Of a stretch of 64,000 nucleotides of DNA, positions 1 through 64,000 are shown one piece after another. A model generated the notes under the pieces. The model did no database searches and was not told where the DNA came from. It worked only from the letters and a program-made list of their open reading frames with translations. Within the stretch, counting starts at the first letter, position 1. Each line of letters opens with the position of its first letter. The stretch comes from Perna viridis (lineage: Eukaryota). Where the stretch lies: the NCBI GenBank assembly GCA_037379345.1, contig CM074512.1, positions 33,604,001 to 33,668,000 of the forward strand, in the 5' to 3' direction. A program made the position numbers and the translations under genes.

Positions 1-1635
1 AGGAGTTTATCAAAATGTTGTATACTATAAGTAAAGTATATTATAGCAAAAGAAAATGAAAGTTAAAATAAAAGATTTTGAGGTAGTTAAAAACATTCAT
101 TTTTTTCCTTTAGAATAATTCTTTCCGCTATATTAAAGTCAAATTCTTAGAAAATTTGAAATTGTTCCCTTTCTAAAATCATTGTTAATGACTTGCTGAA
201 CTATCTAATGCTGTTGAAGATCAGTAATCTGTTTAATGTTAAATATATTTTGGTTCCACTCCTCAATTTCTCATTTCCATAATATTTTCTGAATACTTTA
301 TGAGTTGCTTAAAATTTATGCTCTGAAGATGTATTTTTAATTTGAGTACGGTATTAATATTAAGCTATGAGCTTTTTTTTTCATTAAAATTTCAATAAAA
401 ATTTATGATTAATAACTTTCTAATTGAGTTTTAGATTATGCTCTCATTTTGCATAATCACACTTCAATATTCATGATTATTAAAGTTCCCATATTGGTCA
501 GGAATAAAAAAAAAATGTAGAGTTGTGGTTTGCTTTCACCAATTCCTTCATACAGACTCTCTCAGGAGTAATTTTGTTCTTTTATATAATCATATTATCA
601 CCACAGTAAGGATTGCCCATTGAAAAGCGTAATAAAAGGATAATAGATATTGAAATTCTGTTGTAATTAGCTTGGTAAATAAGCATTTGTGTTAGTGGGT
701 ACAAGGTTTGGCAAGATTGTAGGTGGCTTTGGTAATGGAGGTTTCTAGAATCACAATATCCAACTGTCTGACATTTGTCATTTTGATGAAATGATATCAT
801 ATTTAGAAATAGCAGTGATTTACAAATTGCATGTTGCAATGTCGCAGTGATGTAAAACCAATATGGTTCTAAATTGTCCATTTTAGATTGTAGCCACGTC
901 ACAAATGTAAGAAGGCAGATAAAACTGTCATTTTTAGAATTTGGACACGTCACTGGTAATATAATTGAACATGTAAATCACGATTTTATTGTTTTTGATT
1001 ATTTTACATAATATGATTTTCTAATCGTATTGAGCATGATTCATAGTCTCAATTGATGATGGCAATTACTGGCTTGAATTTTATATTAGGATAGCTCTGG
1101 GTTTTACAAACACGGGATCATAATCCAATCTACTTTAACTTGTAAATCTAAGTCTTATCACTGCTTGGTTAATTAGTTTATTAAGGGAAAGTGGCATGTA
1201 TTAACATCCCTGATTTTGGTTTGGTTAGGTCAGGGTTTTTATCTTGTCATCTTGTTTGAGCCTTATATAAGGCTTTAGAATAGTCAATTTTGGTGAAAAT
1301 TATAGTCAAACACCAGTAGTCATTAAGTTAGATAGAGAAATTAAGGTTGATAATTGAAGCTTCAATAAATATTCTCATTTGGCAGAGATTAATAGTCTCT
1401 GTAATATGGAATTTTGAAAAATGAAGAAAATTGATACTCTAAAATTGAGGTACCTTCTTTAAGTGTACTGTTGTGAAGAATGTCCTCTTGAAAAAGAATA
1501 TATTATAGAAAAAATAGAGAAAAGAATTCTTATTATCCAATTTAGGGCCATCAAGAGGCATGAACATATATAACCAATTAAAAATTTGACATTAACATTA
1601 ACATCATACACATGTACATATTTAAACCATAAAAA

Positions 1636-1696
1636 ACTTTTCTTTTTTAGGTAAGTGGTGTATTTTTGTTCTTTTGTTGTTCTTGGTTTGGTAAGT
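1636..1696 (+). promoter_or_regulatory. Candidate recursive splice site (ratchet point) with 40-nt cryptic RP-exon
   Basis: cttttcttttttag|gtaagt (AG 1649-1650, GTAAGT 1651-1656), followed by a second donor ttg|gtaagt at 1691-1696. Confidence 0.55.
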
Positions 1697-3191
1697 AACT
1701 GTTTCACTTATGATTATTTCCATTGAAAAAAACTGTGAACTTCTAACGTCCAGTGATAAATAACTGCATTTTCAAATAAATATGTCAGTGCCAAAAAGTA
1801 TTAAACCATGAAAGTTTTGAATCATCTGCCAACTTTACCAACTCTAGTTAAGAACAAATCTTTTTAATGATTTTGATTGATTGATTAGCAATTGGAAGTT
1901 TTGCCCTTAGTTTTGCCTATTTATCAGTTTTTTTGCACTTTATTTCCAAAAGACTACAAAAATATTCCAGCTATTAAGAGTTTATTGTCACTTTGATGGG
2001 TATTGAAGTATTTGTTTGGTTTGTACAAGTTGACAAAAAATTGCATGTAAACAATGTAGACAGGCCTCCAATTGCTCAGATACTTATTTGGTCATCTTTA
2101 TTTATGCATTATAGAATAATATCACCATGGAAAAAACACCATTCCCTGTTTGCATTTATTCCATCAATTATGCTTCTAACAGTAAAATAAATAGTTTAGA
2201 AAGAAGAAATAATTTTACAATCACTACAAATGATAGTCTTGTTATTATGTCGATAAAAAAGACCTCAAGTTAACGGATTCTGTCTGTGCTAAACTTGCTT
2301 AATTGAGTCCTTTCTATTGACAAGGGACAACATTTTGTGATAATTTGCTTTGTCAATGGGTATGGAGGACACAATGTCTTTTGTAACACTTTTTTTTCTA
2401 TACAGTTTGATCATTATTTACCACTAATGAGTAATAACTGTCCATTGGTAAATTGATTTCTTTATACAAGTTTCAGGTCTAAATTCACTTACTAGAGTGA
2501 AAATGCCAGATTTTGGAAATTGCGCTTCTGCAGAATTCTATTGCATGATCAAAGCTACAAATCAAATATTTTGTCAACAGATGTCATTTTCAATTTGGTC
2601 TGCACATTAAATTCTTTCCCCCTTTCTAAAAAATATATTGAGAAATGTAAGACACAAAAATATTTTACACCTTACAATAATGTTTTTAGTGAATCATCAT
2701 TGAAAAAATTGTGTGTAAGTTGAGCAGGTATATAGAGTGACTTAGGGATATAATTTGAGATTTTGGCAGGTGTTCGTTCTAATTAGTAATTATTCAGGTT
2801 TTATTGACAGGAAGGCTTATTATAGCAATATATACCATTTACATTCCAATGGGAAGAACTTGAACATGATGCTTCTACTTTAATCATTTTCTCAATTTGA
2901 TCAAATCTTAAATCACTTGTCTTGAGTTCAGTTGTACTTGTGAAGCGTGACTGCAGTCGTAATGATAGTGTTCATTTACATAGAACTATAATTTAATTGG
3001 TTGTTGAGCAATAGTTTTGTAAAAATTTGCTTTTTCGTTATTATAAGATTTAACTTGTAGACATTTTGAACAACTGTAATGTAGTTACCCAAAACAATAT
3101 TTGAATCTGAATAATAATGAAAATGTTTCTTTGGCATGTATGTATTTGTAAGGATAGAGTAACATTCTGTAGTGAATCCTGGTTTACATAG

Positions 3192-3347
3192 AAGAAGTAT
3201 TTAAGGGAACCAAGATTCTAGCATAAATCAAAAGAATGTAATCCAGGGACAAAGACCCGACATGGAAAACAGACATATGCAACAAAGAACATAAAACAAA
3301 TATAATAATACATACAAAGTAACAAAAGTGAATAAGCAACTCAGACT
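3192..3347 (-). mobile_element. 3'-end fragment of the same Penelope-like family
   Basis: aagggaaccaagattctag...aaagaatgtaatccagggacaaagacc...catggaaaacagacata...catacaaagtaacaaaag matches 30450-30595. Confidence 0.75.
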
Positions 3348-6300
3348 GGAAAAAGTCTGCTAAGGAAAATATTGTCAAAATGAAAACAAAAGCTGAAGGA
3401 GTTCAGAACTATAGGAATAAAGAGATAAAGATAAATTCAAATAATGCTGTAGCACCAATGATTTGTAAAAAGAAAATGCCAGGATGGAGTGTTAAATAAT
3501 TGCTGTAAGAGTTATCCTTCTTGGCTACAATCCAAGGTTAACCTCTGAGTAGGAGTGCAAGGTTATTGCAGTATGTTTTTCATGTTTTTTTATGGAACTG
3601 GCCATGACTTTTTCTGGAAGTTATTAATTAGGATTAGCGTTAACTTCCTGATTTCATCTTAACCTATTTGCCATAAGTTTCTAATACCTGGTATTGTTTC
3701 CTTCTTTTGTTTTCACGATAATGCTTTTAATTATTGCAAGTTCTTTGAAGGTTGAAAAAACACGTGACAATGACCAATCAAATCTTAAAAGCAAAGTTGG
3801 ATAATACAAAATGGTAATGAAATGATTTCTCTGTTCAGTTGGATTTCTAATTTTGTTTTTTAGCTTACACCCAGAATAAAAAAGAATTGTCAAAATATTA
3901 ATTTTTCACTAAATTTGTATTGGGCATGAAGCATTAAAGAATCTCCATAATCATTTCTCATGCAATGGAATATCTTTTCTTTTCTGAGACCATGAAATTC
4001 AAAATCTGAAATAATATATATATTTTTTTTTTTATCAAACCTGACATTCTAGGCAACTGGTGAAAAATCTACATGTATTTTTAATCCTTTTTCCTGTTCT
4101 TATTTTCAACAAAACGTTTTTAACTTTGTGGTGACTAAATCTGAAGCTGTACAGAAAACTTTCTAAGTAGTTTTCTATGAAACGACTATAATAAGATGTC
4201 CATGAGCTAATGTATCAGTTCTCAAAGTTATAATTCAGCCTGAACATTACCTAGGCCTGTTTTTTAAAAGTCAAATCCTGTGAATAACAAGCCAATTACA
4301 GGAAAAGAAAATGTTGAAAACTTTATTTTTGGCTTGTGAGTAAAACAGTTTATCATGGAAAACATGTTTTACTCACTAATTTGTTGTTTATAACCAGATA
4401 AAATAAGGATGTGCTTCTAACATAGTATACTGAGAAGTTAAGGCTAATCTTTAAAAATACTATCAGCATATGATAATAGTACCAAGTAAAATAACAGCTG
4501 GAAATGTTTTTCATTATATTAATTATCATAAGTATGAAGCTATTACTGTAGATATCATCTTATCTTTCACACGAGTATGCATGAATACCGTATACTCTCA
4601 CACCTTTTTGTCAACTTTTGATCATTGTTTTTTTTTTTCTTTAATATTTTAAAATTAGTCAACCTGTTTTATCTGATTATCACTGATCCAGTCATTTTAA
4701 AGAGAGGAAAAAGGGTAGTTTACCAATTTGTCAAATACACTATAAATGAATTGATGGATTGAATTGCACATGAAATTAATAAGTTTTTTTCCCATGTGAA
4801 TTGTTCCATAATTGAAAAAATGAATTGAAAGAAAAAGGTGAATACCCCCTTCTATCTGCTAATATACAGCTCTTTGGTTCCAACAGGTGCCTGATCAGAC
4901 AATTTTCTCACAAGTTATAGATAAGTACACTTTAAAACTGAAATTTTAGTACATTATTAAATTTTTTTCTTAAGTTTCAATAAATGAATGAAACTCCATG
5001 TTGTGTATATCTGATTCTATCTAAATAAAATCCTGGCTTGCCTTGTCTATTCTAAGGCCTATTTTCCATTAGGCTCATATGAATTGAGATGGTTTTGAAG
5101 TACACTAACTTAGACAATAGATTGCTTATATGGCTTATTTATTACATTGACATAATAGGTATATATCTTTAGAAATTTTTATAATGGAAGATAGACATGA
5201 AGAAATGTCCACTTAGGGACTTAGAAACAGATTGTTAGAGTTAAGAGAAAATGCTGTTTGTCTATAAGTAAAGCTCTCTTGTACAGTGATAGATGGCTTG
5301 GAAAGGTCAGCTAGATTGAAAAGGTTTATAGAATTTGGATTGTAGATTTTTCATCAGCTCATGAAGAATGATTTGATCAAATGGCAATTGTCTAATGGCT
5401 CCTTTGTGGTTATTTTAAAGCCACATTATGGGCCAGTTGTAAACAGATGTGTCTAATGCTTTACTTATTCCATGTGGTGGCAATTGGCACATGTTCACAG
5501 ATTTTGCTAAATTAAACTTGACCAAGGTGATAGTTGTAGAGTCCTGTGCAGTTAAAACTCTAGCACCAGGAATAAAGGTTTCAGCTGACCCAGGTGAGAG
5601 TTATAGAGTCTTACATATGCACTTGAAACTTGAGTAAGGGGTTTAGTTGACTCAGATGAGAGTTGTAGAGTCCAGTGCAGTAAACTCTCCAGCACAAGGA
5701 AGGAGGGGCTTCTTGTTTCATTGCTGATATTTAAATGAACTCCTTCAATTTTTTTCAAAGCTGAAGCACAAAGTTGTTGACCTTAAAATACAAATTAATG
5801 TTGATTTAGGTGTATCTTATATAATTACAGTTTTCATTGAAGAGGTTTTGACTTTTTTTTTTCCTTTTCCAAAATGGATGTGTCTTTCAATAATATGCTA
5901 AAGACTTAAATATAATAGAAAATTCTATGGGTATCATCTAAGTATTAAATTGTATTGTTTCTTTGCATGAGTCTATTTTTTTCCCCTGACTTTCTTCTAT
6001 TTCAAGACATTTCCATACATTTAATGCTACTTAATTACAGTTTTGTATAGAAATGTAGTGTGTAAGTGTTAGACAAAATCTAATTCCATTAGTGGGTCTT
6101 TACTGTGAAGAATAGAGATGACTGATCACTTTTATAGTCTTCAGAGTCAACCATGCAAAAAAAAAAAACTGCTGGGACGACATTTCTTGACAAGAATTTC
6201 CCATTGATAGATCTTATACTATATGTCACCAATTGTTAAAAGCACTCCCAAATAATGGAAATATGAAATGGGCATTAATCACATGAAATGATACTCTCCT

Positions 6301-6499
6301 TCATAATTCATTGGCTTGAGAAAAAAATGGAAATCTTAGACGACAAACACAAATTTGCGATTAATACAATGTTCTAAGTACTATAGGGTTAATATCTTCA
6401 TTTTGAAGATGCAATTTATATGGCTGATTCGGAAATGTAGCACAGTCCTGTTAGAAAACTGTCAATGAGACAGTGGCATCAATAGTTTGCAATCTGGTA

Positions 6500-6931
6500 A
6501 TATTAATTACGTAGTGATTTAGTGGCCGTGTTCAGAATTTACCCTGGTCAGTATATTTCATACCCGGCAAGGCACAGCCGAGCCAGGTATGGAATCTACT
6601 GATTAGGGTAAATTCTGTAAACGGCCACTCAATCGCTATGTAATGAATTTATCCCATCGATGACTTTGTTTTTGTTTTTTTTTTTTAAAGAAAAAAAGAT
6701 AATTTATACCCGATATTTATATAGCAATAACTTTTGTTTTGTATGTCATCTGCCGTAAGCGAAGCAAAACGTTTGGTCGCCATTTTGGTTGTAGTAAACT
6801 AAAAAACGATAACTGACCGGGTATTGCTAAAATAGTGACCGTGTATCGGAAATACACTGTCCTCACGTGATCAAAATACAGAGCGCCGATTAGTTGATTT
6901 CAATTGATAATTATCAGAGGTGGGGTAAATA
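6500..6931. mobile_element. CpG-rich non-autonomous element with a 139-bp terminal hairpin (family uncertain)
   Basis: Hairpin 6506-6644 with ~63-bp arms. A second short inverted pair is atttatcccatc (~6647) / gtggggtaaat (~6920). The internal motifs cgccatttt and tcacgtga and the CpG enrichment contrast with the flanks. Confidence 0.6.
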
Positions 6932-9660
6932 CAAAATAACCTGTTAAATTTAGTGAAATTTCTGATACAAATATTCAGGGGAATCATAGGATAATAACTG
7001 ATACCATGGCCTGAAGGTTGCAAAAACCATGCACTAAACCTGCAGGCAAAGAGGGTTCAGTTAGGACAAATTTAATTAGTCTTGTATGGTTACAAAAACC
7101 TTGCTCAAATATGTAGTCAAAAATATGTTCAGTTTCAATGTCAACTTGCATTCTTATAAAACTGAAGTTGATTATTTTACATGAAATTTAGTATTTTTTT
7201 GCTGAAATTCTTATTGCTCAGTCATATAATTGTAGCTATATAAAATTTAAGCTGTGTTTCAAGGTTTGTTGAAAGGTTATTTAAGGAAACCCCAGTTTCT
7301 GCATTCTCTGTTCATACATGCTTGATACATTGCAGAATTTTTATCAATATTTTGGCATATTTCATGTGGTTTTATGATAAGGAAGTGTGGCGTGGAGGAT
7401 ATAGTGCAGTATGCTTTGGAATTTTTATTTTGGTAGATTTATATCCACTGCATACCAGGAAGATGATGAAAAAATATGCATCAAAAGTTTGTATGTGATT
7501 GTTGCTACTGGTTTTATGGTCATAAAGATGTGTAATCTGTTTACTGTTTGTCTTAATTAAGCATTTAAGTTGCAGTAAGACATTGAAAAGCCTTGTCTGT
7601 TAGTGCAACTGTGGAGGGCACTTGTAGTTTTTGGCCGATATTGCTAACCACCATACAATTGTCAATTTGAGGACAAATTCTTGCATAATCTTAAATTTTT
7701 TTATTTGTCTAGTAGTTTCATGGTTTTGTTCATCTATAGAGCTCTTTGATTTTGATATTAGCAACCTTGACATACTATTTCTTTCTGGACTTTTGAAATT
7801 TGATTGCTATTTCTAATGATAGCATACTTTCTTGATTTGTATATAGGGTTATTAGATTGAAACCTGAAGATTAGGAGTATAGCTTTTACTTTAGTTTGGC
7901 TGTGGGACCAATATTTAAATTACTTGGCCATCAACTTTCTATTTGCTAGTGAAGTGAGTCAAATATTTCTATTTAATTTGTCTGTTAGTTGCTAACTTCC
8001 GTGTCATTTTAAACTTAGTTATACATTGAAAATGATACAATTCAATTTCTTGCCAGACATCAAATGTAAAATGAATTTGTCTGAGAAAAAGAAACTGAAC
8101 CAGGTCCTGGATATTTAGTGTTTTGTAAATAAGAAAAAATTTCGGGCTTGAAGCTGATTTACATGCAAGATAAATAAACTTTCGTATGTTCCCTCAGCTA
8201 CATGTTTTAAGTTCACATGCCTCATAGGATTTTATATAAGTGTTTCACAAGTTAATGTCATGTTGAAGGCTAAAGACAATTTGTTGAGGTGACAACCAGC
8301 AAAGTTTATCATGTCCTTTTTACTTGTTTAAGACAACATTTTAGTCATTTTAGGGATGTGTCGTTTTGATTGACATTTGTGAATTAGCTGAAATTGTCCC
8401 TAATGATTGATTTTAAGATATAAGTAATGGCAAATCTCGCATGGAAAATTGTAATATTTTGAACTAAGCATAATGCTTGGATGAATTAAAATATGGTTTA
8501 GAAATATCTTTTTTCATCACAATGGCTTTTTTTTATTTAAAGAGACTTCAGAGCATGATTTTGTTTACTGGCATTGGATTTGGCTTTTGGTTAAAAGAGT
8601 TTGAATTTGTCAGGTTTTTGGTTTAGAAAGAGTTGAAATTTGTCAATTTTTTTTTTTTTTTTGAAACATTCATTTTTTATAGAGTTTTGGTGAAGTAGAT
8701 GTTGGATTTGTTCTGTTTTTGGTTTGGCTTGATCAGTTGCCTATAACTACCACCTGTATGAATTAAGAGTGTGTAGGTTTTCCAACTAGTTTTGAAGGTG
8801 TTTCAGGAGTTGGTATTTGGATTGACATTTCAGGGATGTTCACTGATTTACCAGTTTGTAACCTGCTGTAGGTATTTGCCAGTGTGCTGGCACCTAATTC
8901 TCAATGTACTCTACCTACCATCTTTCCATTCTAATGAGTTCGAGTGCACACCAGGATTCTGATTAACTCAATTTTCATGTTGTTTCTAATACAATCATAA
9001 TGTTTGAATGCACTTTTACCCGCTTTATTCAGTTTCATCAATCAATGTTCTGCATATTTCTATCAGTGTTGTCTTTGGAAGTCTTTTGGGGCACGAATTG
9101 TTCTGTAAATCATGTTAATTTGCTTGTGATTTTAATTTGTATCTGACTATGGCTAAATGCCTTCTGACAGAAATGTGTATCTTTTTTTCTAATTGTGCTG
9201 CATGCAATAAATCTATTATTCTCTCAGTGTTGATTTCTGGGTTCTTTTTAAGTCAATCTTCTCAACTTTTCCAGCATTTAAGATTGCTTCTGAGTTCTGA
9301 TTTGCTGTGTCAGTATTAAATAGTGCTAAAAAACTGACACTGCAATTTGTTAAGTTTATTTTGCAGTGTCAGCATTTTTTGTGTGTGCTGTACTGTTAGA
9401 TTGAAATACAGAAAGTTTAAAATTTACTTAGTGTTTTTAGGCCATGTTGCTACTGTCAATCTAATGGAGTATCAGTGTCTTTGTATTCAAAGGATAATAA
9501 CCTCCATTTGAATTTCTTGATCAAATCATGATATAGTATGTATTAACTTAAATAGGAAGAAATATTTTCATAGAGCTATTTGAACAATAACATTTTCTCA
9601 GCTAATGACATGATTGGGTAGCCTTTTTAGGTGTTCCTCAAATTGATATGTAGGTTAATT

Positions 9661-9693
9661 CTGCTAGAATCTTGGTTCCCTTGATCACTCTTT
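9661..9693 (+). mobile_element. 33-bp extreme 3' tip of the same Penelope-like family (opposite orientation)
   Basis: ctagaatcttggttcccttgatcactct is the reverse complement of 54682-54709. Confidence 0.6.
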
Positions 9694-10709
9694 CAATGAC
9701 CTTCACATTACCTTAACCTTCATATCTTTGTACTTTTATGAATGAAATGGAGATATTTGTTTATATACACTGAAGTTTGCCTCTATCTTTTTTTTTTTGC
9801 CAAGATACTAATCTGTTAAATTAGAGAATGCCTAATTTACTTTAATCAAGTGTGAAAATAATGTGATGTAAATTTGATCAAGTTTCAATGATCAGTAAAG
9901 CTACACTATAATGGCACATTTTAAGTTTTGTTGATTACATCATGTCAGTTATGATAAATGAGTAGTTTAGTTCACACTTTGTGAAATTGCAATTTATGCA
10001 TGTGATTTCTTGAATTTATTGATAATCTAATTCTCCAAATTGTTCACTTTGCCCAATTATTGAATATGGGTTTGATATTTTAGATAAAATTGAATTCCAG
10101 TTTTTTGTTTCTGTTTTTTTTTTAACTTTTCAATATTCAATTTAAGTATTCAATGCAGTTTTAGTCCTAGTTTCATAGAAATGAAGTTTTTTCAATATCA
10201 TGAATGTCTGTCAGACATTAAAAAAAAAGAAGGTAGGTTTATCCTACAGTAAAAACCTAAATTTCTAGATATATTAACCACTACATAGTCCTGTAACTTG
10301 ACATTGCTGATTTGCAGTATTAAAACGGAAAAACTTATTCACATGCTCTCTGAAAAAAGCACTCATCTATATGTTTGTATTCTTATGAAATGAGTTGAGA
10401 TAAACTCTCAGTATAAATCTTCAGCTATTGCTTTTTTGTATCTGGCAATGTTCCTTTGATTTTTGAACTATCATTTTAAGTTATTATTTTATAATGGAAT
10501 TTTTTATTGGAGTTAACTTTATTGTTATAATATCATTGTCAGTCCACACCCAATTGCTAATCAGTGCTTTCAGTACTTTGATTATTTTAAATGGCCCCTT
10601 TATCTTTTAAGACTTTTTGATGGATAAGCTAAATGCTTTAATTCCTGTTTGTATAAATCAAATCAATTTTACAGATGTTTAACTCAGTAAATACAAAACT
10701 TCTGAAATA

Positions 10710-10965
10710 GGTTAAAATTTCAAACCTAGATATACTTATTATAAGATGTTAATGTTCCTTGCCAAGTGTGTGGCAAACAAGAGACAGACTGGTTGGCTTG
10801 GAGTCAAAATTATATGTCAGAGAGAACAGTGGCATGTCCCTTTTGAGCTATGGCTTCTGTAAGCTAGTGTGATAAATTCCAGGCTAGGTCTGTTCAAATG
10901 ATCAAACATTTTGTCCTTAAATGTATTGAATACTTCCCAATGAAAGTAACACTTTAATCGATCAA
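10710..10965 (+). mobile_element. Degenerate SINE resembling mollusc Meta-domain SINEs
   Basis: agactggttggcttggagtcaaaattatatgtc...catgtc...aagctagtgtgataaattcca resembles my recollection of the common bivalve SINE core (agactggttggctcggaatcaggataatgtgtcc...gagctagcactataaaaatcc). Not verified by alignment. Confidence 0.45.
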
Positions 10966-11841
10966 TTAGTCTGATTTTCTAACATGCATAAGGCAAGCAT
11001 ACATGTATGTATTTATACAGTGCTGTGACTTGCATATTTTACTTTAAATCCCCCATATTTGTAAAAGGAGATAATTTGATAAGAGGACAAGAGTTTAAAA
11101 AGTGTTCAATTTTGAAATGCTAGCAATATTGACTGCTGAATAGGTAAAAACAAAATCTTAATAGTGAATTTTGTTGCAGGTCTTAACTTACTCTGGTAGA
11201 GGTCATGACCTCAGCACATTCCCATGTCTTGCAAATATTTTGGAAAGCATGACAAGTAAAGCAGTGCATGTACAATATATTGTTCTGATGCTCATAATGT
11301 AATATGCAGTAGAATGGATTTTAGAACTACATTTAATGATATGATAAACATTGGTAAGAGATCAAAATATAAATGGGATCTTTTCTTTACAGAGTTAGTG
11401 CCCCAATTATTTGAAATCATGTGACATGTGACTGGATCTTTAATTTCATCAGGGACATTTGAAACTTGATATCATTTAATAAATGTTTCAATTGATATTT
11501 TTTATTTTCATACCTGCAAAATATAGATTAATAATTCCAATGTCATTGTTTGAATGACTTGCTGATTGTATAATACTGAAATTATTTGTCTTATTTTGCT
11601 TATAAAATTACCAAAAGTCATTCTTGAAACAAGCAATTTATACTATTTATCAATTATTAATCATGATATGAATAATTACTGTATTCCAAACCCTTGGGAT
11701 GGTTGTTGTTAAGACTCCCTTACACATGAATTCATTTCACCAGTAGAAAAAAAAAAGAGTCATGAGATGTTCCGTAGAACATTTCATGTCAATTTTAGAC
11801 AATGAAAGGAATGTTTTATTTACAACAAAATATGTACCTAC

Positions 11842-12103
11842 CATAGATTTCAACTATCATGCCGAAGGGCATGACTAGTATCGATACTAAGAGATCCGCT
11901 ATGGCAAGAGACATCAGAAAATAATTTGTCATATTTTGTAATCGACGGTCCCATATCACAGCAAGGCACACTAATAAATTTCCGAGTGAAGTACAAAATA
12001 TCAGTGGTATTAGGGATAACATTCCCCATCGTAACTCTCTCTCTTCTCCAAAGTCAGAAGAATTTCCTACACTTTGATTTAGAACAGTAGTATTTTCTAT
12101 CAT
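11842..12103 (-). CDS. HTR2: Second 5-HT2-type receptor paralog (gene B), coding exon 1 (N-terminus, TM1, TM2); the remainder probably lies beyond the left edge
   Basis: ATG 12103 has an in-frame upstream TAG at 12142-12140. The exon encodes sequons NTT/NQS/NSS and [48 protein letters not shown]. The donor TATG|GTAGGT (GT at 11841-11840) falls after 87 codons + 1 nt, the same residue and phase as in gene A. I recognised no TM3-7 exon in 1..11841. The subtype call rests on TM1-2 only. Confidence 0.85.
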
Positions 12104-13187
12104 GATTTGTTCGCACTGTGTTTTATGTTCTCTGCATTTCTATTGCATCTCTGTATAATAAGTTTTCATTAAACTTTATTCCAATCACTTATATTTTCTC
12201 CAAAATGAATTCATCTTTTCTCATATTCCTATTGTTATACAAGTTATGAAAGTTAATCTTAGTTGTTGTACTTAGTGTTTTCTAGATCTTTGATTAATTA
12301 GTAATCATTCAAAAACCTTAAGTGGTTTATTCTTAGCTCTCATGGATATAAGTTAAAACCACAAATTCTTTCGTTTAAAACATAAGGTACAGTGCACTGA
12401 CTCAGTTTTCATTTATGTATTTAAAACATGTGTAAACTGTTTGAAGATGATAATGAAGAGCTCAGGACAACCTTCTGTGATAGCACACCAACCCACTCCC
12501 AATGTTCATCAAATCTTCACAGCTGCCAGAGCATCAATAGTCCAATCAGTGATCAGCATTCTCTGATGATTTGGATCAATAAATTGTTTATATGTGGAAT
12601 TGTTATTTAGTTTTTTAATGAACCGAATAAGATGTTAATTGATTCTCAAATGTTAGGAATTAACACAAGGTAATAGATAATTAGCGTTGGTGGAATTACC
12701 AGATTGTTCTTTCCAGAATGTCTCTGTTTAGACAAAACATCCCAATTACTGAACAAAATATGAGAAAATTATGGTGTAAATTGTTATTAATGATGTATCA
12801 AAATATAAGTATTATGATTAATGAATGTTGTTTTCTACAGTATTGGTATATTTTTCCATATTTAAGACATTTTTCCTTTTTTGTTGTAAGTAGTTTTACA
12901 CTACTGATGACCTGTATAATTAAGATACTTTTCCCAGAATGTACCAGGATGTTAGAACTTGATAAATTACAAGAGAAATGTGTTATAAATCTAGTTCTTA
13001 AATTGTAAGGGTAATCATAATATATTTCTTTTGTGATTTTGAATGTATAAGAAAAATCTTTGTATTATTGTTACTTAGGATCATACCATTCTGTGCAATT
13101 TTTGCAGTTCCATATTTGGTATAAGTAGAAACTCAATTCAGTATGCAGTATTTTTTGTCATCATTAATTATACATAAAAAAAATCCT

Positions 13188-21177: not shown

Positions 21178-21360
21178 TTTTTTATACCCCAATGAGAAGA
21201 AGGGAATATACTGTTTTATCAAGTGTCTGTCTGTCTGTTGTACACTTTTTTTCATAACAGTTTTCTCTGGAATGAATTGTCACAGCCACTCAATATTTTG
21301 ACACAAGCTTTATTTTACGTGTTCTATATTAAAGGATTTGATTTTTGGTGTGAACAGAAT
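21178..21360 (+). mobile_element. 5' part of a degenerate HINE-like element
   Basis: tttttatacccc...gaagggaatatactgtttt...gtgtctgtctgtctgt followed by cagttttctc, as at 19000. Confidence 0.5.
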
Positions 21361-22878: not shown

Positions 22879-22948
22879 TTTTTTCATGTTTTTATTTCTT
22901 TATTTTCAGGTAAGAAAATATTTTTGATAAGACATTAGTGTGGTATGT
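22879..22948 (+). promoter_or_regulatory. Candidate recursive splice site (ratchet point) with 33-nt cryptic RP-exon
   Basis: ttttttcatgtttttatttctttattttcag|gtaaga (CAG 22907-22909, GT 22910-22911), followed by a second donor gtg|gtatgt at 22943-22948. Confidence 0.55.
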
Positions 22949-45626: not shown

Positions 45627-45816
45627 TTGGTTCTACTAGGTATCCATGTTTCCCTATGTACTTGGTTCTACTAGATATCCATGTATCCCTATTTACTTGG
45701 TTCTACTAGATATCCATGTATCCCTATTTAATTGGTTCTACTAGATATCCATGTATCCCTATTTACTTGGTTCTACTAGATATCCATGTATCCCTATTTA
45801 ATTGGTTCTACTAGAT
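45627..45816. repeat. Minisatellite, 35-bp unit, ~5.4 copies
   Basis: ttggttctactagatatccatgtatccctattta(c/a) starting at 45627, 45662, 45697, 45732, 45767, 45802. Confidence 0.95.
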
Positions 45817-47301: not shown

Positions 47302-47766
47302 TTTTTCCTCACTTTGAAAGCAAGTGCTGTATAGTGATCATAATGTCTGTTTGTCCGTTTGCATTTTTTTCATTATAGTTTTTTTCTGCAACTACTTATC
47401 ACAACCACCTGATATTTTCACAGAAACTTTATATAGATGTCATAGGTGGAGAGTGAAGGGACATCAACTTGTTTATATTTTGACCATATTATAATATGGA
47501 TAGGGAGTGGCAGGTATCCTTTAGTCAGCTTTGTTAACAATTGTTTATATTTTGACTATACTATAATTTGGATAGGGAGTGGCAGGTATCCTTTAGTCAG
47601 CTTTGTTAACAATTGTTTATATTTTGACTATACTATAATATGGATAGGGAGTGGCAGGTATCCTTAAGTCAGCTTTGTTAACAATTGTTTATATTTTGAC
47701 TATACTATAATATGGATAGGGAGTGGCAGGTATCCTTTAGTCAGCTTTGTTAACAATTGTTCTAGT
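47302..47766 (+). mobile_element. Degenerate HINE-like element whose 3' end is amplified as a 72-bp tandem repeat
   Basis: gtctgtttgtccgtt microsatellite at ~47345, then 4 copies of a 72-bp unit (47469-47761) ending ggcaggtatcctttagtcagctttgttaacaattgttctagt. Confidence 0.5.
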
Positions 47767-50309: not shown

Positions 50310-50428
50310 TGATTTTTAAGTCCAGGAAAGCGGCAATGAAAAAAACTAAAATGAAATAGCCAAATACTTGATTTTTAAGTCCAGAAAAGAGGCAATAAAA
50401 AAAATAAAATGAAATAGCCAAATACTTA
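50310..50428. repeat. Tandem duplication, ~60-bp unit x2
   Basis: tgatttttaagtccag...ggcaat...aaaatgaaatagccaaatact occurs twice. Confidence 0.85.
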
Positions 50429-53021
50429 AAGACAATAGGAATTAACAACAAGAACTATCAGTTGAGGTTAATGCACTGTTGAATCAATGAAGTGTAGATT
50501 TATCAGCTACTGACTGTGAAGCCCTGCACCTTATATTTCTAAAGACAGATATAGAACAATAAACTCACATAATAGGAAAGTGAATGAGCTCAAATTAATT
50601 AGAAATTTCCAGTTATTGATAGTAAATTGTTCAGGGTGCTAACTAATTTGACACTTTGCTTGCATATAAATCTTGATGATAGCAAAATAATGAATTGAAT
50701 TTGGCTGTGTTTGTTAAATTTCTGCTCAACATATTGAGGAGGGATTTTGCCCTGTTATTTTTCATTCTGTATTTTTCAGTGCATTTGATTGATATATTAT
50801 TTTTTTTAATGGTTCGGAAATGTTTAGAAATGATTTATGAGTCAGGTACTCAATACTTCTGAGCCAGATATTGAAATGTTGAATTAAGTATTGAGTTATA
50901 ACAATATTAACTGTATTTCTGCTTGTTATTTCAAGAAAACAATGCTTCTATTATATTTTTTTACACTGAATAGAAGAATACCTTAACTTGTATTCCTCAT
51001 TCATGAAGCATGCTTTGATAAATTTTGATATGATTTATGTCTAGGCTAGAATGTCACTATTTGGAATTGTTTGCTGAATCGCTGACCTTGGACAGGTCCA
51101 AATCATTGATTCTGATTGAAATCTAAATCTATGTTAATCCCAATTTTTCTATTTCCTACAGCTGATTGATGTTCTTGAAGGTATGGCATTAACTGAGAAA
51201 AATAACTAGCTACTTCTTATTTAACTGAGGACATGTTCGTCTGTAACCTAGTCTCAAGAGCATTTTCTTTCCTTTCTATGTTCTAATGAAAAACTATGAA
51301 TAATTCTCTTTGGAGTTCCTACTGAACTCTGTATTTAAGTTTATGACCATTGGAATACATTGGATGATATGGTAGATTATACCTATTAAAATGTTATATT
51401 ATAACAAAAAAACCCAAAATAGGAATTTAGAACAAAAGCATTTTAGGTTTGACTTGTAAAATTAATTCAAATAGTGGATATTTTCATGTTTTAACCCTTC
51501 CCTTCAAGTAATGAAAAAAGTACTTTTTTTTCCTCATGTCTATCCACCTGTTTATCCATATACACTCTAAGCCTCTCAAATGATGCAGTGAATTTTGATT
51601 AAACTTGGTCATATCATCTCTAGAGATTGTGCATTTGAAAGTTACTGATTTATTCTTAAAAGGGAAATAATTCAATGTATGAGTAAGAGTGGAAATGTGA
51701 GCCTTCATTTATTGTTTGTGGTTTACAGTTGTTCAAATTACCTCATCTTATGCAGTATTGAATAAAGGTTTATTGAGAGTTGCATAAATAGATACAACTT
51801 CACCAATATGGAAATAAATTTCAATAATTGATATCGTGTTATGCCTTGTTTTTAGCTTCTGTGACTCAAGAGATGTTAATGATTTTACAAAGTGTGAATA
51901 TTTATAAATATGAAAATCAAAGGTTTCCATATGTATTTGCATCATACTATCAAACTGATGAGTAGTATAGTAACAGAATTAATTGTTATAATCTTGGGAA
52001 ATGTAAATTTTATATTCAGGGTTTCCATTATAGTGGGTGGATTTCTTTATAGAGCAACCCAAAGATTATTTAACATTTTGCAAAACATATCCTATAATTT
52101 CCAAAGCAATCAACTCTACCTGTTGTTATGGTTGTTTTGAATGGTAGAGAATTTTTTGTTAAGTCTGACAATCTGTACACAAATATGAAAACTTTGAGAA
52201 ATTTGTACTTGCAGAATGAGCTCTTACTAGAAGAAATAGAGTACTTTGACTTAAACTTCAAAGGTCAGTGACCTGAAGTAGATTGTACAAGGTCACTTTG
52301 CCATATAAACTAATGTATCCATTTAGGGTTGGTTTCTATCAATGATTCTAAATTTTCGAATGTGTTTAGACTATTGTGATTGTGTCATGTGAAGCCACTG
52401 AAATGCCGATGGTGGAATCTAAGAAAATCCTCATGTCTTGGACATATAGAATGGAATACTTGTTTGATTTCATGTACTGCAAATTAATCATAAGACTCTC
52501 ATGGCGTCACCATGTCCTATTTTAGTTTATCATCGGCTGAATTAGCATGTGTTGGAATTGACAACTAAAAGGGAAAAAATATCAAGATAGTAAATTAAAT
52601 GCCAGACTCTCTAAGTATAGGGATCAAGTGGTCTATTGAGGTTGAGTATTTTGATGCAAATAAGAATGACTTGCAATGTAACATTCTTGCTCTCCAGACA
52701 TTTTATATATGTATATTTAAGGTTTATGATCCATATTCTCATGTCTTTGTCTTACAGCCATTAATCACTGATTTTATAGTGTTTATGGCCACAAATGTGC
52801 TGTTAAGTACCCAGTATGATTAATATCAATAAGTCATTGCATGTAATAGTCACTAGTTTATGTAGGGATGTGAAAAGTACAGTGATTATCAATAAGATGG
52901 TGCATGTCGTATTGTATGGCATGTCCAATTGAAGGATTGTCATTTTCATAGTCACTTGCTGTCATTGTATTGAGCTTGTCTTGTAAACCATACATTATTA
53001 TGATAAATAGATGCTTGTGTT

Positions 53022-53490
53022 AGTCATGTGGTAAGATGTGGCTGAGTACTGTTGTGTGTGATAGACAGTCATGGTGTGCTGTGGCTGCATGAGTATTGCT
53101 GTGTGTGATGGACATTCATGGTGTGATGTGGCTGCATGAGTATTGTTGTGTGTGATGGACAGTCATGGTGTGATGTGGCTGCATGAGTATTGTTGTGTGT
53201 GATGGACAGTCATGGTGTGATGTGGCTGCATGAGTATTGTTGTGTGTGATGGACAGTCATGGTGTGATGTGGCTGAGTACTGTTGTGTGTGATGGACAGT
53301 CATGGTGTGATGTGGCTGAGTACTGTTGTGTGTGATGGACAGTCATGGTGTGATGTGGCTGAGTACTGTTGTGTGTGATGGACAGTCATGGTGTGATGTG
53401 GCTGAGTACTGTTGTGTGTGATGGACAGTCATGGAGTGATGTGGCTGCATGGTTGTGTGTGACAGACAGACCTGGTGTGATATGGCAGAG
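53022..53490. repeat. TG-rich minisatellite, 43/47-bp units, ~10 copies
   Basis: gtcatggtgtgatgtggctg(catg)agta(c/t)tgttgtgtgtgatggaca. Confidence 0.95.
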
Positions 53491-53764
53491 TACTGTAGTA
53501 TACAGTAGACAGTCATTAGGTAATGCCAATGAATTCTGTAGTATGTGACATGGTGTCATGGAGTAACATGGCTGTAGTAATATGTGACAGAGTCTTGGAG
53601 TTTGTCATGAATTTGTCATTTGTAGTATCTAGACCTAGTTAAAGATATGAGAGTTATTGGTCATTAAATAACCTCTTATATTATTGTCTTACCAAGGATG
53701 TACATTTGTATCAACCAAAAATAGCTCTTTCTTTAAAAAATTTGTGATTTAAAAGAATTTCAAA

Positions 53765-53900
53765 TATAACAAAGATGGAAATGATGAATTTGTCGAAGAG
53801 ACAACAACCCCACCGGGATGACAAATGTCAGCTCAAGGCCATCTATGGGTCTTCAATGATCCACGAGGAAACCCTCGCACCACAGGACAGGCTGCAGCTG
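53765..53900. mobile_element. Second copy of the 16245-16640 interspersed repeat
   Basis: Same motif order as 16277-16372. Confidence 0.6.
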
Positions 53901-54681
53901 AATGTTTTTTAGTCATTCACTAAAAGGTCTTTGTTGACTTTTTGATTATTAGAATTTCCATTTTCATGTGATTTACATGTTGTTGCGTTGCTTTTTTTTT
54001 TGTTTTGTTTAAAGAATGGAGCTCCTATAGCTACAGATCAGGTAATATTCATGAAATGATCTTTAGTGTTATTATATTGTTACTATTCAATCAATCAACA
54101 GCCCACAAAAATTATCTCTACTACATAACTGTCATTACATGTATTAAACACTTAGATACACGAAGTGTCCTAATTGCCCAAACATGTATTTCATAGCCGC
54201 TCTGTGAGGTCTCTTTGTTATTCAAAACCTCAGCCACTACAACTTATACCTGATAATGTTATCAAAACTAAACACTTCATTCATAATTATTTCCCAAAAA
54301 GGCAAATTTGTAGAATTACCTAAGAAGGGGTATTAGGTGAATGAAAGAACTAAAACCATCTTGAAATGTCAAATGGGATTGTTCATTTACATTACGGTAA
54401 TTTTATTTTCGTTGACATTCGGCCTGTAATAACTGTTACAATGTATACCTGCCTATAACAAATCCTTCATTCCCAAAGGAGTTCAGTTTTTACAAGTTAT
54501 ACCTGGATAAGTGATTTTGAATACCATTAAACACTTATCATTTTTCAAAGCCACAAAATACCTTTATTTGGCTAAATGCAAAAAAAAAAAAATAGCAACG
54601 GTAAATAGTTGTGTGTTTACAGTAAGTGAAATCGTTAAAGGATAAAAATTTCTAGTGCTGTAAGTGTTTTAACAGTATGAT

Positions 54682-54780
54682 AGAGTGATCAAGGGAACCA
54701 AGATTCTAGTGGAAATCAAAAGACTGTAATCCAGGAACATCCATAAGACCAGACATGGAAAACAGACAATCACAACAAGT
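54682..54780 (-). mobile_element. 3'-end fragment of the same Penelope-like family
   Basis: agagtgatcaagggaaccaagattctagtggaaatcaaaagactgtaatccagg...agacatggaaaacagac matches 30442-30525. Confidence 0.75.
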
Positions 54781-56071
54781 ATGATAAAATGTGCTGCTGG
54801 CAATGTTCAGAATTTCTTTGAAGAGAGCTTGCCCCATCACCACAAATCTTGAACAATTACGGAAGTCTGAGAATTTGTGCAACTGTTTGTGATGTCATCA
54901 ATATCAAACACTTTGATTGGAGTTACCATGGAAGTTAAGAATATTCTCAAACTTAGGGTTTTTTTTATTTTTTTGATGTTGAATCAAGTACTCAGGAGGA
55001 TTTTTCTCAACAAATTTCTATTTACTTGTAAATGCTAATTAACACCAAATGTGGGTCAACCCTATAATAGTGCCATTTATAAAATCCCTGGTTAATTTAG
55101 GTTTGGATTAATGAATATCCAAGAAATCTATTTAGCACCAGTTGTTTTTGTAAATGAAAATATTGCAAAAAAAGTATGAATGATTTTTATTAATACCACT
55201 TACTGATTCTAACATATATTTGGAAGCTTGGTACAATAACTTTTGTATGAAAATGATCTTACTTGAAACACTGAGGTTTTGAAACATTATAAAATAAAAT
55301 GGGATAACATTTTGTAGTTTACTTAAGATCTTTGCTAATAAAAAAGTTGTTTTAAGTTTTTTTTACAAATTTAATGTTCATAAATTTAATTTATCCTTTT
55401 TAATGTTCTTGGTCCCTTCAAAAAATTAAATGATAAAAAAAATCAATACAAGAAATTTCAAAACGACAATTTTTAAGCATTAACTTTCTTGCAAAAATTT
55501 TATTCCCAATATCATTATTTTGTAACCAGTATTGAAGACAGATTTTATATAAAAGATGGATTAGTAGTTATTCTTGTCAGGAAGCAGTCTTTATTGTAAA
55601 ATCCACTTTGATGAGCTGGTTTTATCCATACATTCTATTTTTACTAATCAAACAATAAAGAAAGCTCTATTAAAATTATTGTAAGTATAGATTTATTGTT
55701 ATTTTACCAAAGATGCAAATTTCTATCTGAACGCCATGTTAAAAGCAAGTAGATATTATTCACCAAGGCACCCAAGTTTATTGATAAGCAATCTGTTGAA
55801 AATATTTGTACTACTTCAGAAAAAGAGTTGATATTATCACAAAAAGGGCTTACTAGAAATGTATAGATATCATGTAAATAATGATATGTTTTCAAAATAA
55901 AACTTTCTATTCAAGAAACTGATGAAACTTTGAATGCTTAACTTCAATTACATGTTAAAATGTATAATTTGAATATTGTTAAGGTCTAAAATTACTGAAT
56001 TGAAGAGAGAAGAAGTAAAAAATAATATATATTATATTTGTTTTTTGGTTTTTTTTTAATGAGTATCTTAC

Positions 56072-56402
56072 CTGTAAATTCATTTATGATGCTAAGAGGC
56101 ATCACAATGACACTAAGCAAAAGATCAGTCACGGCTAGCGAAAGTAAAAAATAGTTGGTCACCGTTTGGAGACGTTTTTCCATGGATATTGCCATGCATA
56201 CTAAAATATTTCCAGCTATCCCAAATATTATAAGTGGTGATAGAAATAAAATCACCCAATTATACTCTGGCTCCAATGCTGTTGAAGAATTTGTCATATT
56301 TTTTAATATTGTGGTTTCATTCAGTAGTATATCCCATTGAACATAATTCAATATTTCTGAAACATTTTCTTCACTAAAATTTTTCTGATCCATTAAAGTC
56401 AT
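56072..56402 (-). CDS. HTR2: 5-HT2-type serotonin receptor gene A, coding exon 1 (N-terminus, TM1, TM2)
   Basis: The ORF from ATG 56402 encodes N-glycosylation sequons (NFS, NVS, NET, NMT, NSS), TM1 with GN (IFGIAGNILVCMAI) and the 5-HT2-like EKRLQTVTNYFLLSLAVTDLLLSVIVMP. The exon ends at a consensus donor, ACAG|GTAAGA (GT at 56071-56070), after 110 codons + 1 nt (phase 1). Confidence 0.93.
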
Positions 56403-58334: not shown

Positions 58335-58775
58335 CCCATTCTCCCTAATTTTGAAATTATCATTCTCCCTAATAATGAAATGACTGTTCTCCCTAATAGT
58401 GAAATGCCCATTCTACTTAATAGTGAATTGTCCATTCTCTCTAATTTTGAAATGATCATTCTCCCTAGTAGTGAAATGACTATTCTCCCTTATTTTGAAA
58501 GGACCATTCTCCCTAATAGTGAAATGACCATCCTCATCAATAGTGAAATGACCATTTCACTATAGTGAAATGGCCATTCTCCTAATTTTGAAATGACCCT
58601 TCTCCCTAATAGTGAAATGACCATTCTCCTTATTTTGAAATGACCATCCTCCCTAAAAGTGAAATGACTGTTCTCCCTAATAGTGAAATGACCATTCTCC
58701 CTAATTGTGAAATGACCATCCTCATTAATAGTGAATTGACCTTTTTCCTTAATAGTAAAATGACCATCCTCCCTA
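58335..58775. repeat. Minisatellite, 24-bp unit, ~18 copies
   Basis: Unit ccattctccctaat(ag/tt)tgaaatga. Confidence 0.95.
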
Positions 58776-59324
58776 TACACCATGTAGTGAAGTGGCAGGT
58801 AATGGTATTTAATATACCAGTACCTACTGTATACATCTGTAGACCTATTAAAATCAGTATTTAGTAAACAGTTACCATGAAAGGCCCAAAGAAAGATAAC
58901 TTTTTCCAAAGTAGCAAACCTGAGATTTTTGATTTACTGGAATTGGTAAAAATCTGCCAGACCATTAATTAATGAAAGTTCTGAAACAACACCATACATT
59001 CACTTTTCTTGGAGGGGCAAATTCCTAGTGCAAATGAGATTCTGACAAATATACTTTCTTAACACTTAAGATAAGAACTACTAAATATACCTTGTGTGCA
59101 AGCCTCTAAATGTACATGGAAAAAATAGTATTTAGTAATTTTTCCATGAATAGCATCTTTCCCCATTTTTTAAGGATAGAAATAAAGGTAAAGTTATTGC
59201 TTTGTTTTGTTTTCAGTACTTAATATTTGCATATGATTTGCATTAATATGTAATTATACGCCACATAATGTTGCAGATCTTCACCATGTTTACTGCCATA
59301 GTGTCATAGGTCTAGCTTCGTATG

Positions 59325-61102: not shown

Positions 61103-61144
61103 TCCTCATTTTAGAAATTTGACCCCGAAAATCACAACTTGAAT

Positions 61145-61398
61145 TGATTGCAAATTTGCTATATGGCATGTGTTGTAAATGGTTACAAATTTGTTAAGTG
61201 GCATGTGTTGTAAATGATTACAAATTTGGTATGTGGCATGTATTGTAAATGATTTAAAATTTGGTGTGTGGCATGTGTTGCAACTGATTTCAAATTTGCT
61301 ATGTGGCATGTATTTGTAAATGATTTCAAATTTAGTGCATGGCATGTGTTGCTAATGATTTCAAATTTGCTATGTGGCATGTGTTGTAAATGATTTCA
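61145..61398. repeat. Minisatellite, 35-bp unit, ~7 copies
   Basis: tgatttcaaatttgctatgtggcatgtgttgtaaa. Confidence 0.93.
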
Positions 61399-64000
61399 GT
61401 TGTGTGCAATACCATCTTCCTGTTATTTAAGTGGGGTTTGTATCTAGCATGACAAGGAGTGACACTTCATGTTATAAAGGGACTTTGTATATTGTTAAAA
61501 CATACCATTCAATGTACTGATAGTAGTTCTAACGGTATCTTACTCAATAATAGTAGGAGTCATTGACAAATACTGTTCTGATGTAATTGTTGATTTGAAA
61601 CAGTTGCATAATATGAAATTGTTGCCGGACAAATTCTGCCCACCTTGTCATTTTTATCTTTGATTTGTTGCATAGACTTGATTACTTGACAAATTCTACC
61701 CATCCTATCTTTACATTACTTGCATAGAATACAGAATTTATTACGCTGCTAATAATACCAACTATGCCGGTTTTTATTTTTGATAGAATACAGCATTTCC
61801 TTTTTAAACAAATACTGCCTGTATGTGTTTTGTTGATGAAAAAAACAGAAGGTGGCCGGGCAAGTTTATCCCATTGTATTGTACATGTTGGTTACCTAGA
61901 TAAGATAGAAAAGAGATGCTTAGTGGACTATTAGTGTTGCTTTCTTTGATCTATAGTTTTTGTAATAGCAAAATATATTACAATTCTAATTTCAGAAACA
62001 GTATTGTCTGAAACCTATGTGAGATAATTGATGACATACTGCTTCATCTCTTTGACTCCAAGCTACTCACTGATTTCATGAGTTTATTAGAAATAAACAA
62101 GTGATGACGTTATCTTTTTGTAGAATTTCATAACTGAATTCTTCACAAAAATTTTAATTTTGTTATTGAGTTATCAAAACGCATATATAGGATAAATTAT
62201 TATCAATTTGAAGGATGGTAATTTATTGTTTTGATTTTGCCCACGGATGTGTCCTGGAAAATGTTCTAAAATTATATTACTTTTATATTAGGTTCTATAA
62301 ACATATATTACAGAATGATATTTGTGGAAGCTTTTCTTGAAATGTTACATTGTAATATTATATGATTGTTGTTATTTGTGGTAAACATTGATGCATATAA
62401 ATTGTAGCAGTTGAAACCTCCATCATGAGAGGTGAAGTTGACCAGGTTGTTTTGTCTGTAAGTTATGTTCCACATGTGTCCAAGCAGAATATATCTTTAT
62501 ACATTATACTTGTTTGATGTGAACCTTCAAGATCTTGTTATAAATGGAACTATAGTGTGCTACAGTGTTTTCAAAGAAGCCTATACTTTTGTCAAGCATT
62601 TTCTTAGTTACTCAATAGCAGAAATTGTGGTTCTGTCAAAAAATTCTTAAAGAGATTTTTAATAATGTGTCTAATGTGTGATTATTAACATATAAAATAA
62701 GGCACAGGTTTTATAAACATACTTCAGTCCTGAGATTTATAGCTGTTCTATTTGTTGTCTCTCTTGATCAGTCTTTTATGCTTTCATTTCTCATTAACCT
62801 GAGATGACCAGTGATGAAGTTCTTCATACTACTGTATTAGATACAGTCTTATTACTTTTGGAGTCATTGAATTTGATAGCTCCCAAACCAAAATATAAAA
62901 AAAGACCTCTTTGAACTTGCTTAATTCCTGAAGCCATTATATTCCAAACCTGTAGAAGATGATACTGTAATGTTAGTGCTTTCTTCATTTTTGACATAAT
63001 CTGAGCAAAAAAGATTATTTTAACAGACATTGTTGCTCATAAATAAAAATTCATAGCACTATCTAGACACTTTAATAACTAATTCAAACAGACTATAATC
63101 ATATTCTAGTTGTTATAAGATATTACATCAGATATGTATCATTTTTTGGACATCTATATTACACCCAACTATTAGCAAGCATATACTTTTCTATTATTGA
63201 ATATAAAAGTCTGATTTTTTTTCTTTTAATCAATGTTCAGTGTGATGCAGAATGATATGGAATAGGTTCACTTAATTTCAGGAGACATCTCAGTCAAGAA
63301 TTTTGTTTATTTTCCACTTAGAAAATACTATGGGGTGGAATTGTCTCTAGAAGTTTGTATTTTCCTATAATTGCAGTACTTTTGTTTGCCATCAGTTCAC
63401 TTGATGTATGTGTTATGTACTTAATGAAGATTGTATAAAGAACTCCCTCTTAATAACCATTTCATGAGTGTAAGTATGATTCTATCATTACAGATTAATG
63501 GTTTATGGAAAGGATAGACTTAGATCTCACTGGAGAAAATGCATGAAAAATTACCCTCCCTAGTGCTTTGAATTTTACCAAAAATACATAAAATATCAAA
63601 AAAGTCTATGGTTTATTCTGTTTTAGTCTCCTTGTCGACTGTAGCCGATTTAATAATTCATACAGCCACAATTAGTTCAGTTGTAGAGAACGTTCTTTTT
63701 AAATTTCTCAAAGCTTGGATATTGAATAAAGTATTAGATTTCAGTCTTTAGAGCAGTTTAACTTCCTTACGACATTAAGACATGTCTTCATTTGTGTAAG
63801 ACATGGAGGATGTTTTTCACTTGAAATTTCCCCAAACTCATGATGTGAAATGGAAAATTGAATTGTAGTGATGCTCAGGTCTCCAGTTTCTTATTACTTG
63901 AAGGCATGATTGAGAATAATAAGCCAGAAAGAGTGGCATGCAAAACAATATTGAATGTTTAATAGCGTAATGACATTTTGGTTTCATTATAGATTGTGAA

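Follow-up and report, generated by a model that had tools for sequence, protein, structure and literature searches.

The question raised by this locus is what lies on the strand opposite to a pair of serotonin receptor genes in the mussel Perna viridis. The DNA that was analysed, referred to throughout as the window, is a stretch of 64,000 nucleotides that is placed on the assembly as C2:33604001-33668000, plus strand. The original prediction, made from the letters alone, held that the receptor genes of this stretch sit antisense in a giant intron of an unseen plus-strand gene and that this host could be PSMD1 (Rpn2). PSMD1/Rpn2 encodes a regulatory (non-ATPase) subunit of the 26S proteasome, a housekeeping and essential factor, and standard genome annotation places human HTR2B antisense in an intron of PSMD1 on chromosome 2q37; guests of the 5-HT2 family are expected, by family, to be tissue-restricted. 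It is very likely that the window represents the central part of a 99-kb PSMD1/Rpn2 intron that accommodates two anciently diverged, antisense 5-HT2-type genes.

The host gene can be followed on both sides of the window. Pfam searches that covered the whole genome (a 723-Mb assembly of 46 contigs) find four plus-strand RPN2_N (PF21505) exons above the curated cut-off upstream of the window at C2:33542637-33547152, and plus-strand RPN2_C (PF18004) exons downstream of it at C2:33685571-33685741 (71 bits) and 33687310-33687465. An unseen host on the plus strand therefore does exist, its two ends bracketing the window. For exon mapping 178 kb around the window were taken, and full-length Rpn2 proteins gathered by a profile-free search with one exon were mapped onto them by tblastn. 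The resulting map comprises about 28 colinear coding exons on the plus strand at C2:33539010-33689828, including a PC-repeat (PC_rep) exon at C2:33573544, which in their order match amino acids 6-983 of the protein P0438 as well as the full length of the beetle-type P0080 and the Nematostella P0090. P0438, a protein of 983 aa, is encoded by an intronless Logan contig of 3.1 kb that comes from a close relative and is taken to be an mRNA, and most exons are 90-100% identical to those of the host. Apart from the host, Pfam finds a single RPN2-like match in the genome (L004; G000:C2:49524725-49524937). This RPN2_C-like fragment lies 16 Mb away, contains three in-frame stops and may be a decayed copy; the host is apparently the only intact Rpn2 copy in the genome.

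The two exons that flank the window are adjacent in the protein. The exon at C2:33577714-33577793 ends with ..GFLLF followed by AG, and the following exon opens at 33676857 with A followed by TPEQC, so that the splice sites ..TTCAG|GTAAGT and ..TTTTCAG|AACT rebuild ..GFLLFR|TPEQC.. in phase 2. In the exon map amino acids 610-636 are followed by amino acids 634-674 with zero Rpn2 residues lost in between, and P0438 runs directly from the pre-intron exon into the post-intron exon. Since the residues are contiguous across these adjacent exons, one intron holds the whole window, and both the identity of the host as the PSMD1/Rpn2 ortholog and the reading of the window as a single host intron are borne out by the tblastn map. 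This nest intron (C2:33577794-33676856, equivalent to window positions -26206 to 72856; plus strand) is 99,063 bp long, is of phase 2, separates provisional coding exons 20 and 21 (of 28) and accounts for two thirds of the host gene. Three full-length Rpn2 proteins used as tblastn queries have no plus-strand match within the window, and the two plus-strand open reading frames (ORFs) of at least 90 aa have no credible Pfam match, in agreement with the original observation that the plus strand is devoid of convincing coding exons. The ORFs considered as host exons, 12718-13008 and 34613-34990, were rejected because they are domain-free and, in one case, arise from the translation of a minisatellite.

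Two receptor genes, A and B, both lie antisense (minus strand) within this single host intron. Receptor A, a 5-HT2-like protein of 487 aa (C2:33641944-33660402), is wholly contained in the window. Its first exon (56072-56402) runs from the N-terminus to the second transmembrane segment (TM2), matches the Pfam family 7tm_1 and is 75% identical to the 5-HT2C-like protein P0152 of Mytilus californianus; its single coding intron of about 17 kb (39077-56071) interrupts the protein at ..INEFTG|KWLFGP.., and its second exon (37944-39076; 7tm_1 E = 3.7e-41) encodes the protein from the first extracellular loop up to its C-terminal end, together with the stop codon, and is 81% identical to P0152, the closest named protein. 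Receptor B is 5-HT2-like and 705 aa long (C2:33600345-33616103). Its first exon (11842-12103; minus strand) is supported by 7tm_1, by tblastn and by an open frame, the junction reads ..VEIYG|KFPFGP.., positions 1-11841 are, judging from the junctions, the in-window part of its 13.6-kb intron, and its second exon (C2:33600345-33602200, window -3655 to -1800) falls 1.8-3.7 kb before the window start. The original prediction was thus right in placing the receptor pair on the minus strand, but the window itself holds one and a half genes rather than two, as exon 2 of B lies outside it.

Guests A and B are predicted to be 5-HT2-type serotonin receptors. In a search of solved structures the top 28-29 matches for both proteins are all 5-HT2A, 5-HT2B or 5-HT2C receptors, followed by D2/D4 dopamine and 5-HT1A receptors; the best order is 5-HT2C, 2A, 2B for A and 5-HT2A, 2C, 2B for B. 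Compared with the protein atlas, receptor B matches generic aminergic-receptor clusters only, which carry no information on orthology. The coding intron after TM2 occupies one shared position in A (..FTG|KWLFGP) and B (..IYG|KFPFGP), which is also that of the genes from Mytilus, oyster, Patella, octopus, Lineus and Lingula, and the HTR2B-like gene of the panda has the same post-TM2 intron with an exon boundary near P0152 residue 108. Receptor A (37944-39076) carries ERF in place of the DRY motif typical of aminergic receptors; receptor B (L017:348-2237) retains DRY, and its third intracellular loop is very long, at about 400 aa.

The two guests are about 43% identical, B being the nearest relative of A within this genome. 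In a tree of 37 sequences A groups with its bivalve orthologs, whose order follows that of the species, and B is placed outside the A-type receptors of all the molluscs, brachiopods and nemerteans, on a long branch owing to which its exact position is uncertain. Together the low identity and the place of B outside the A-type clade indicate that the duplication is old; a recent duplication of the guests is rejected, and the lineage-specific tandem duplication that had been proposed has to be abandoned. DNA of the Mytilus californianus locus aligns with that of Perna in the exons, at about 75% identity, and outside them in a single block of 47 nt with 83% identity (window 28342-28388). In this mussel as in Mytilus the block is located downstream of the 3' end of receptor A, and it may represent a piece of an untranslated region or a conserved element.

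Strand composition provides a second line of evidence. In other animals germline transcription is known to leave an excess of T over A and of G over C on the sense strand. It had been judged by eye that such an excess exists on the plus strand even inside the receptor introns, and counting shows that it is real: in the window (T-A)/(T+A) is +0.070 (95% bootstrap 0.052-0.088) and (G-C)/(G+C) is +0.061 (0.039-0.082), and for the whole nest intron the TA and GC skews are +0.073 (0.058-0.087) and +0.054 (0.037-0.072), respectively. On the same plus strand the intron of receptor B has a TA skew of +0.070 and a GC skew of +0.085, that of receptor A +0.056 and +0.082. In the DNA outside the host the values fall to about zero, namely TA +0.004 and GC +0.024 in the 8.9-kb upstream flank, and TA -0.019 and GC +0.022 in the 17.5-kb downstream flank. 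It is proposed that the host is transcribed in the germline through both receptor genes, which would leave the T and G excess on its sense strand even within the introns of its guests. Strand skew in raw sequence can therefore betray a host gene that is otherwise unseen.

The skew could instead have arisen from the direction of replication, from a bias in the orientation of repeats or from regional composition, and overlap with the host by chance. The shortness of the flanks leaves room for such an origin, as does a G-rich minisatellite in the intron of receptor A (53035-53496; about ten copies of a 43/47-nt unit), which lifts the GC skew locally and is the source of a spike in the 50-56 kb bins. 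However, nearly every 5-kb bin between 33.535 and 33.690 Mb is skewed, the skew ceases where the host gene begins and where it ends, and it is little altered by a crude form of the repeat masking that the original prediction had called for, in which 14-mers repeated within the region are masked. Furthermore, the sign of the skew tracks the host strand in four other species. Their loci were oriented with the receptor on the plus and the host on the minus strand, so that a negative skew denotes T over A and G over C on the host strand; TA skew is negative with an interval that excludes zero at all four (Magallana, Mytilus californianus, Patella and Lingula), and GC skew likewise in Magallana, Mytilus californianus and Lingula, the Patella interval including zero. 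In octopus, where the receptor is non-nested, the skew is near zero. The Lineus locus (L026; OU343001.1:139839-184019) is skewed like the nested cases (TA -0.039, GC -0.024) without a called host, which favours a source other than transcription unless the nesting there has been missed by the annotation, as the host-like skew itself suggests may be the case; the contig that carries Lineus PSMD1 (P0433) has the same length as that of the receptor. Overall, a chance overlap of host and skew is improbable.

Contigs assembled from sequencing runs offer a view of transcription within the intron. Four runs from four studies, present as unstranded Logan contigs whose RNA label is a guess, were mapped on positions 20000-25999 between the receptor genes. 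In the unique parts of this interval the coverage is sparse, with a depth of 1-8 and pieces that are exact or near-exact; it includes one contig of 284 nt at 21388-21671, and the patches 22000-22199 and 22800-22999 are present in all four runs. Such coverage is weak evidence that is compatible with the intronic pre-mRNA of a well-expressed host. Outside these sparse, low-depth patches the contigs pile up on two repeats, 23043-23266 and 24800-25999, where the summed depth is very high and the flanks are many and different in the four studies. These repeats are probably abundant short mobile elements.

The cross-species comparison envisaged by the original prediction shows that the same nesting occurs far beyond this mussel. 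In the oyster Magallana gigas, in Mytilus californianus and in the limpet Patella vulgata an A-type receptor lies within an antisense, full-length Rpn2 gene model, and in the brachiopod Lingula anatina within a partial one. The oyster Rpn2 exon right after the guest opens with (AG)A-TPEQC in phase 2. In the giant panda (L028) the last PSMD1 exon before the guest ends with ..GFILF-AG|GT, codon and phase being those of the mussel, and an antisense 7tm_1 gene of 480 aa starts 4 kb past this exon, the last residues of which are ..GFILFR; the panda comparison reached the exon before the guest, as the exon after it lay beyond the DNA compared. Amphioxus has an intron at the same position that is about 200 bp long and empty, in a host gene of 11 kb, and Nematostella is uninterrupted at this position and has no guest. 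The R codon before TPEQC is split in mussel, oyster, panda and amphioxus, with phase 2 read in mussel, oyster and panda. In the horseshoe crab Tachypleus tridentatus PSMD1 spans 243 kb, and two genes of the 7tm_1 family, encoding 691 and 479 aa, lie antisense within it. No called host gene surrounds the A-type receptor of Octopus bimaculoides or that of Lineus longissimus, and the PSMD1 model of Ixodes, which ends near residue 500, gave no information on this intron. The pair is thus linked in Mollusca (three bivalves including this mussel, and one limpet), Brachiopoda and Mammalia, and the ancient synteny that had been suggested is supported, with the same intron position and phase in oyster and panda. 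The nesting is probably more than 500 million years old.

A patchy distribution of this kind, in which amphioxus, Nematostella and, as annotated, octopus and Lineus are without nesting, could also result from convergence. Insertions readily hit the long introns of housekeeping genes, and 5-HT2-type genes might have arrived in the PSMD1 intron by separate events, in molluscs and brachiopods on the one hand and in vertebrates on the other, and perhaps also in chelicerates. However, guest family, antisense orientation, host intron, split codon and phase are identical in mussel, oyster and panda, the nesting extends to Patella and Lingula, and the intron itself is kept in amphioxus. The independent entry of one gene family into one of about 27 introns is very unlikely, and so repeated entry as a whole retains only a slight probability. 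One origin before the split of protostomes and deuterostomes, combined with losses, explains the distribution far better.

It is scarcely credible that the Rpn2 exons on either side are separate or decayed transcription units which no single transcript joins across the window: the panda model P0010, whose last exon lies just before this intron, and the Ixodes model P0099 are indeed truncated, which indicates that gene callers often split or cut PSMD1, and the presumed mRNA that unites them is from a relative, but the residues are contiguous, the splice sites are exact consensus sites, all exons are open, most of them are 90-100% identical to the full-length product of the relative's intronless contig, the gene models of oyster, Mytilus and Patella are full-length and extend across the guest, and another intact copy of this essential gene was not found in the genome.

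Several points weigh against the reading of the window as the middle of an ancient PSMD1 nest. The mRNA that unites the flanking exons comes from a close relative and hence from another species than this mussel, and the flanks that bound the skew are short, 8.9 and 17.5 kb. The sparse coverage by the putative RNA contigs also fits a carry-over of DNA, and these contigs do not give the strand. Octopus and Lineus receptors outside called hosts and a guest-free amphioxus require several losses, and the Tachypleus guests are known as 7tm_1 gene models that are only putatively of the 5-HT2 type. Finally, the protection that an essential host would confer on the nest, discussed below, is an argument from reasoning.

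Under the ancient-nest reading the arrangement would have arisen once before the protostome and deuterostome lineages separated, and would have been lost in amphioxus and probably in octopus. It has probably lasted because the host is essential: any rearrangement with a single breakpoint in the intron would destroy the host, so that an exit of the guests would take a double break or a copying event, both of them rare. Regulatory DNA of the receptors, if scattered over the intron, would strengthen this lock. The locus is a clean test of why gene neighbourhoods remain unbroken, in which an essential-host lock can be set against shared regulatory DNA. With antisense nesting, host and guest are further expected to interfere with each other or to be cross-induced, and the locus offers a natural system in which to study housekeeping transcription through neuronal genes on the opposite strand. 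The Arg codon of Rpn2 that is split just ahead of TPEQC also gives the nesting a fixed landmark. Public records label these receptors 5-HT2A-like, 2C-like or even 'D2 dopamine receptor', and for invertebrate 5-HT2 receptors, whose naming is confused, the position in the host intron could serve as a marker of orthology.

The host intron may be removed stepwise. Ratchet-like sites were defined as at least nine pyrimidines among 12 nucleotides followed by YAG|GTAAG, and both near-consensus sites that had been seen on the plus strand of the window are present. The first (1637-1656, junction 1650|1651) consists of a pyrimidine tract and TAG|GTAAGT, reads TTTTTTAG|GTAAGT and lies 27.9 kb into the host intron; the second (22896-22915, junction 22909|22910) reads TTTTCAG|GTAAGA and lies 49.1 kb into the intron, between the receptor genes. 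A third plus-strand site outside the window (CCAG|GTAAGC; C2:33598030, window -5970) is located 20.2 kb from the intron start. The host intron thus contains three such sites on the plus strand and none on the minus strand, compared with an expectation of 0.13 from Markov shuffles and of 0.24, with a maximum of one, from the 29 other permutations of GTAAG. They would divide the intron into segments of 20.2, 7.6, 21.3 and 49.9 kb, and it is conceivable that the spliceosome removes the intron stepwise at these three AG|GTAAG sites. The oyster locus has one ratchet-like site on its host strand, and the DNA of the nest intron does not align between mussel genera. Among the joints and loose ends listed for the putative RNA contigs none falls at 22909|22910, though such contigs drop rare intermediates. 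Drosophila-type recursive splicing takes place at intronic ratchet points (PMC8605326), which the mussel sites resemble in the juxtaposition of acceptor and donor (a pyrimidine tract and AG|GTAAGT), in their position on the sense strand of a very long intron and in their enrichment over composition controls; by their motif, the mussel sites are candidate ratchet points. No report of recursive splicing in a mollusc was found in a literature search that was not aimed at molluscs.

The order of the guests allows a bolder scenario. In the host direction, B (705 aa) precedes A (487 aa) in the mussel, and a guest of 691 aa precedes one of 479 aa in the PSMD1 gene of the horseshoe crab. The tandem pair itself, with a long-loop type ahead of a short type, could be ancient, both protostome 5-HT2 subtypes having been duplicated inside the PSMD1 intron before the split of Ecdysozoa and Lophotrochozoa and having stayed there since, in an intron of 99 kb that is recursively spliced at the three ratchet-like sites. 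As a whole this scenario is possible but on balance doubtful.

Two further minisatellites are present in the window, one of ten copies of a 51-nt unit at 34444-34958 and one of 18 copies of a 24-nt unit at 58336-58775. The long ORFs 34613-34990 on the plus strand and 58490-58909 on the minus strand correspond to these minisatellites and were rejected as genes.

Antisense nested genes are common, but to our knowledge there are few for which one and the same host intron has been established on the protostome as well as the deuterostome side, and the PSMD1/5-HT2 pair is one of them. No paper in the literature searched names this pair, the intron that it shares across species or its occurrence in molluscs, brachiopods or chelicerates; the matches concerned PSMD11, PSMD14 or a catalogue number, 'RPN2232'. 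The closest known system is human HTR2B in PSMD1, as seen through the panda locus, with which the mussel locus shares the host, the guest family, the opposite orientation and the intron (..F(I/L)LFR|TPEQC.., phase 2). In contrast to HTR2B/PSMD1, the mussel intron has not one guest but two, a pair of 5-HT2 paralogs with deep divergence, and it extends over 99 kb and two thirds of the gene.

Conserved ancestral microsyntenic pairs, or genomic regulatory blocks, are a known class (Irimia et al. 2012, PMC3514665). Like the pairs described in the main text of that study, the mussel locus links unrelated genes across phyla and combines a housekeeping bystander that has a very long intron with a tissue-specific partner. 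It differs from the pairs described there in that the partner is a receptor and not a developmental transcription factor, and in that the nesting is fully antisense and confined to one identifiable intron. Moreover, in contrast to the regulatory blocks of that text, the mussel locus shows a single block of 47 nt aligned with Mytilus and no demonstrated conserved non-coding elements. PSMD1 and HTR2 are unnamed in the main text of PMC3514665, and its supplementary list may still contain the pair.

The opposite nested pair of ceh-10 in polq-1 of C. elegans, whose transcriptional interplay has been studied, is conserved only within nematodes (PMC12274878). As at the mussel locus, a neuronal gene lies antisense in the intron of a germline- or ubiquitously expressed gene, and interference or cross-induction is expected of both. 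Unlike ceh-10/polq-1, the PSMD1/5-HT2 nesting, known here from sequence, spans protostomes and deuterostomes.

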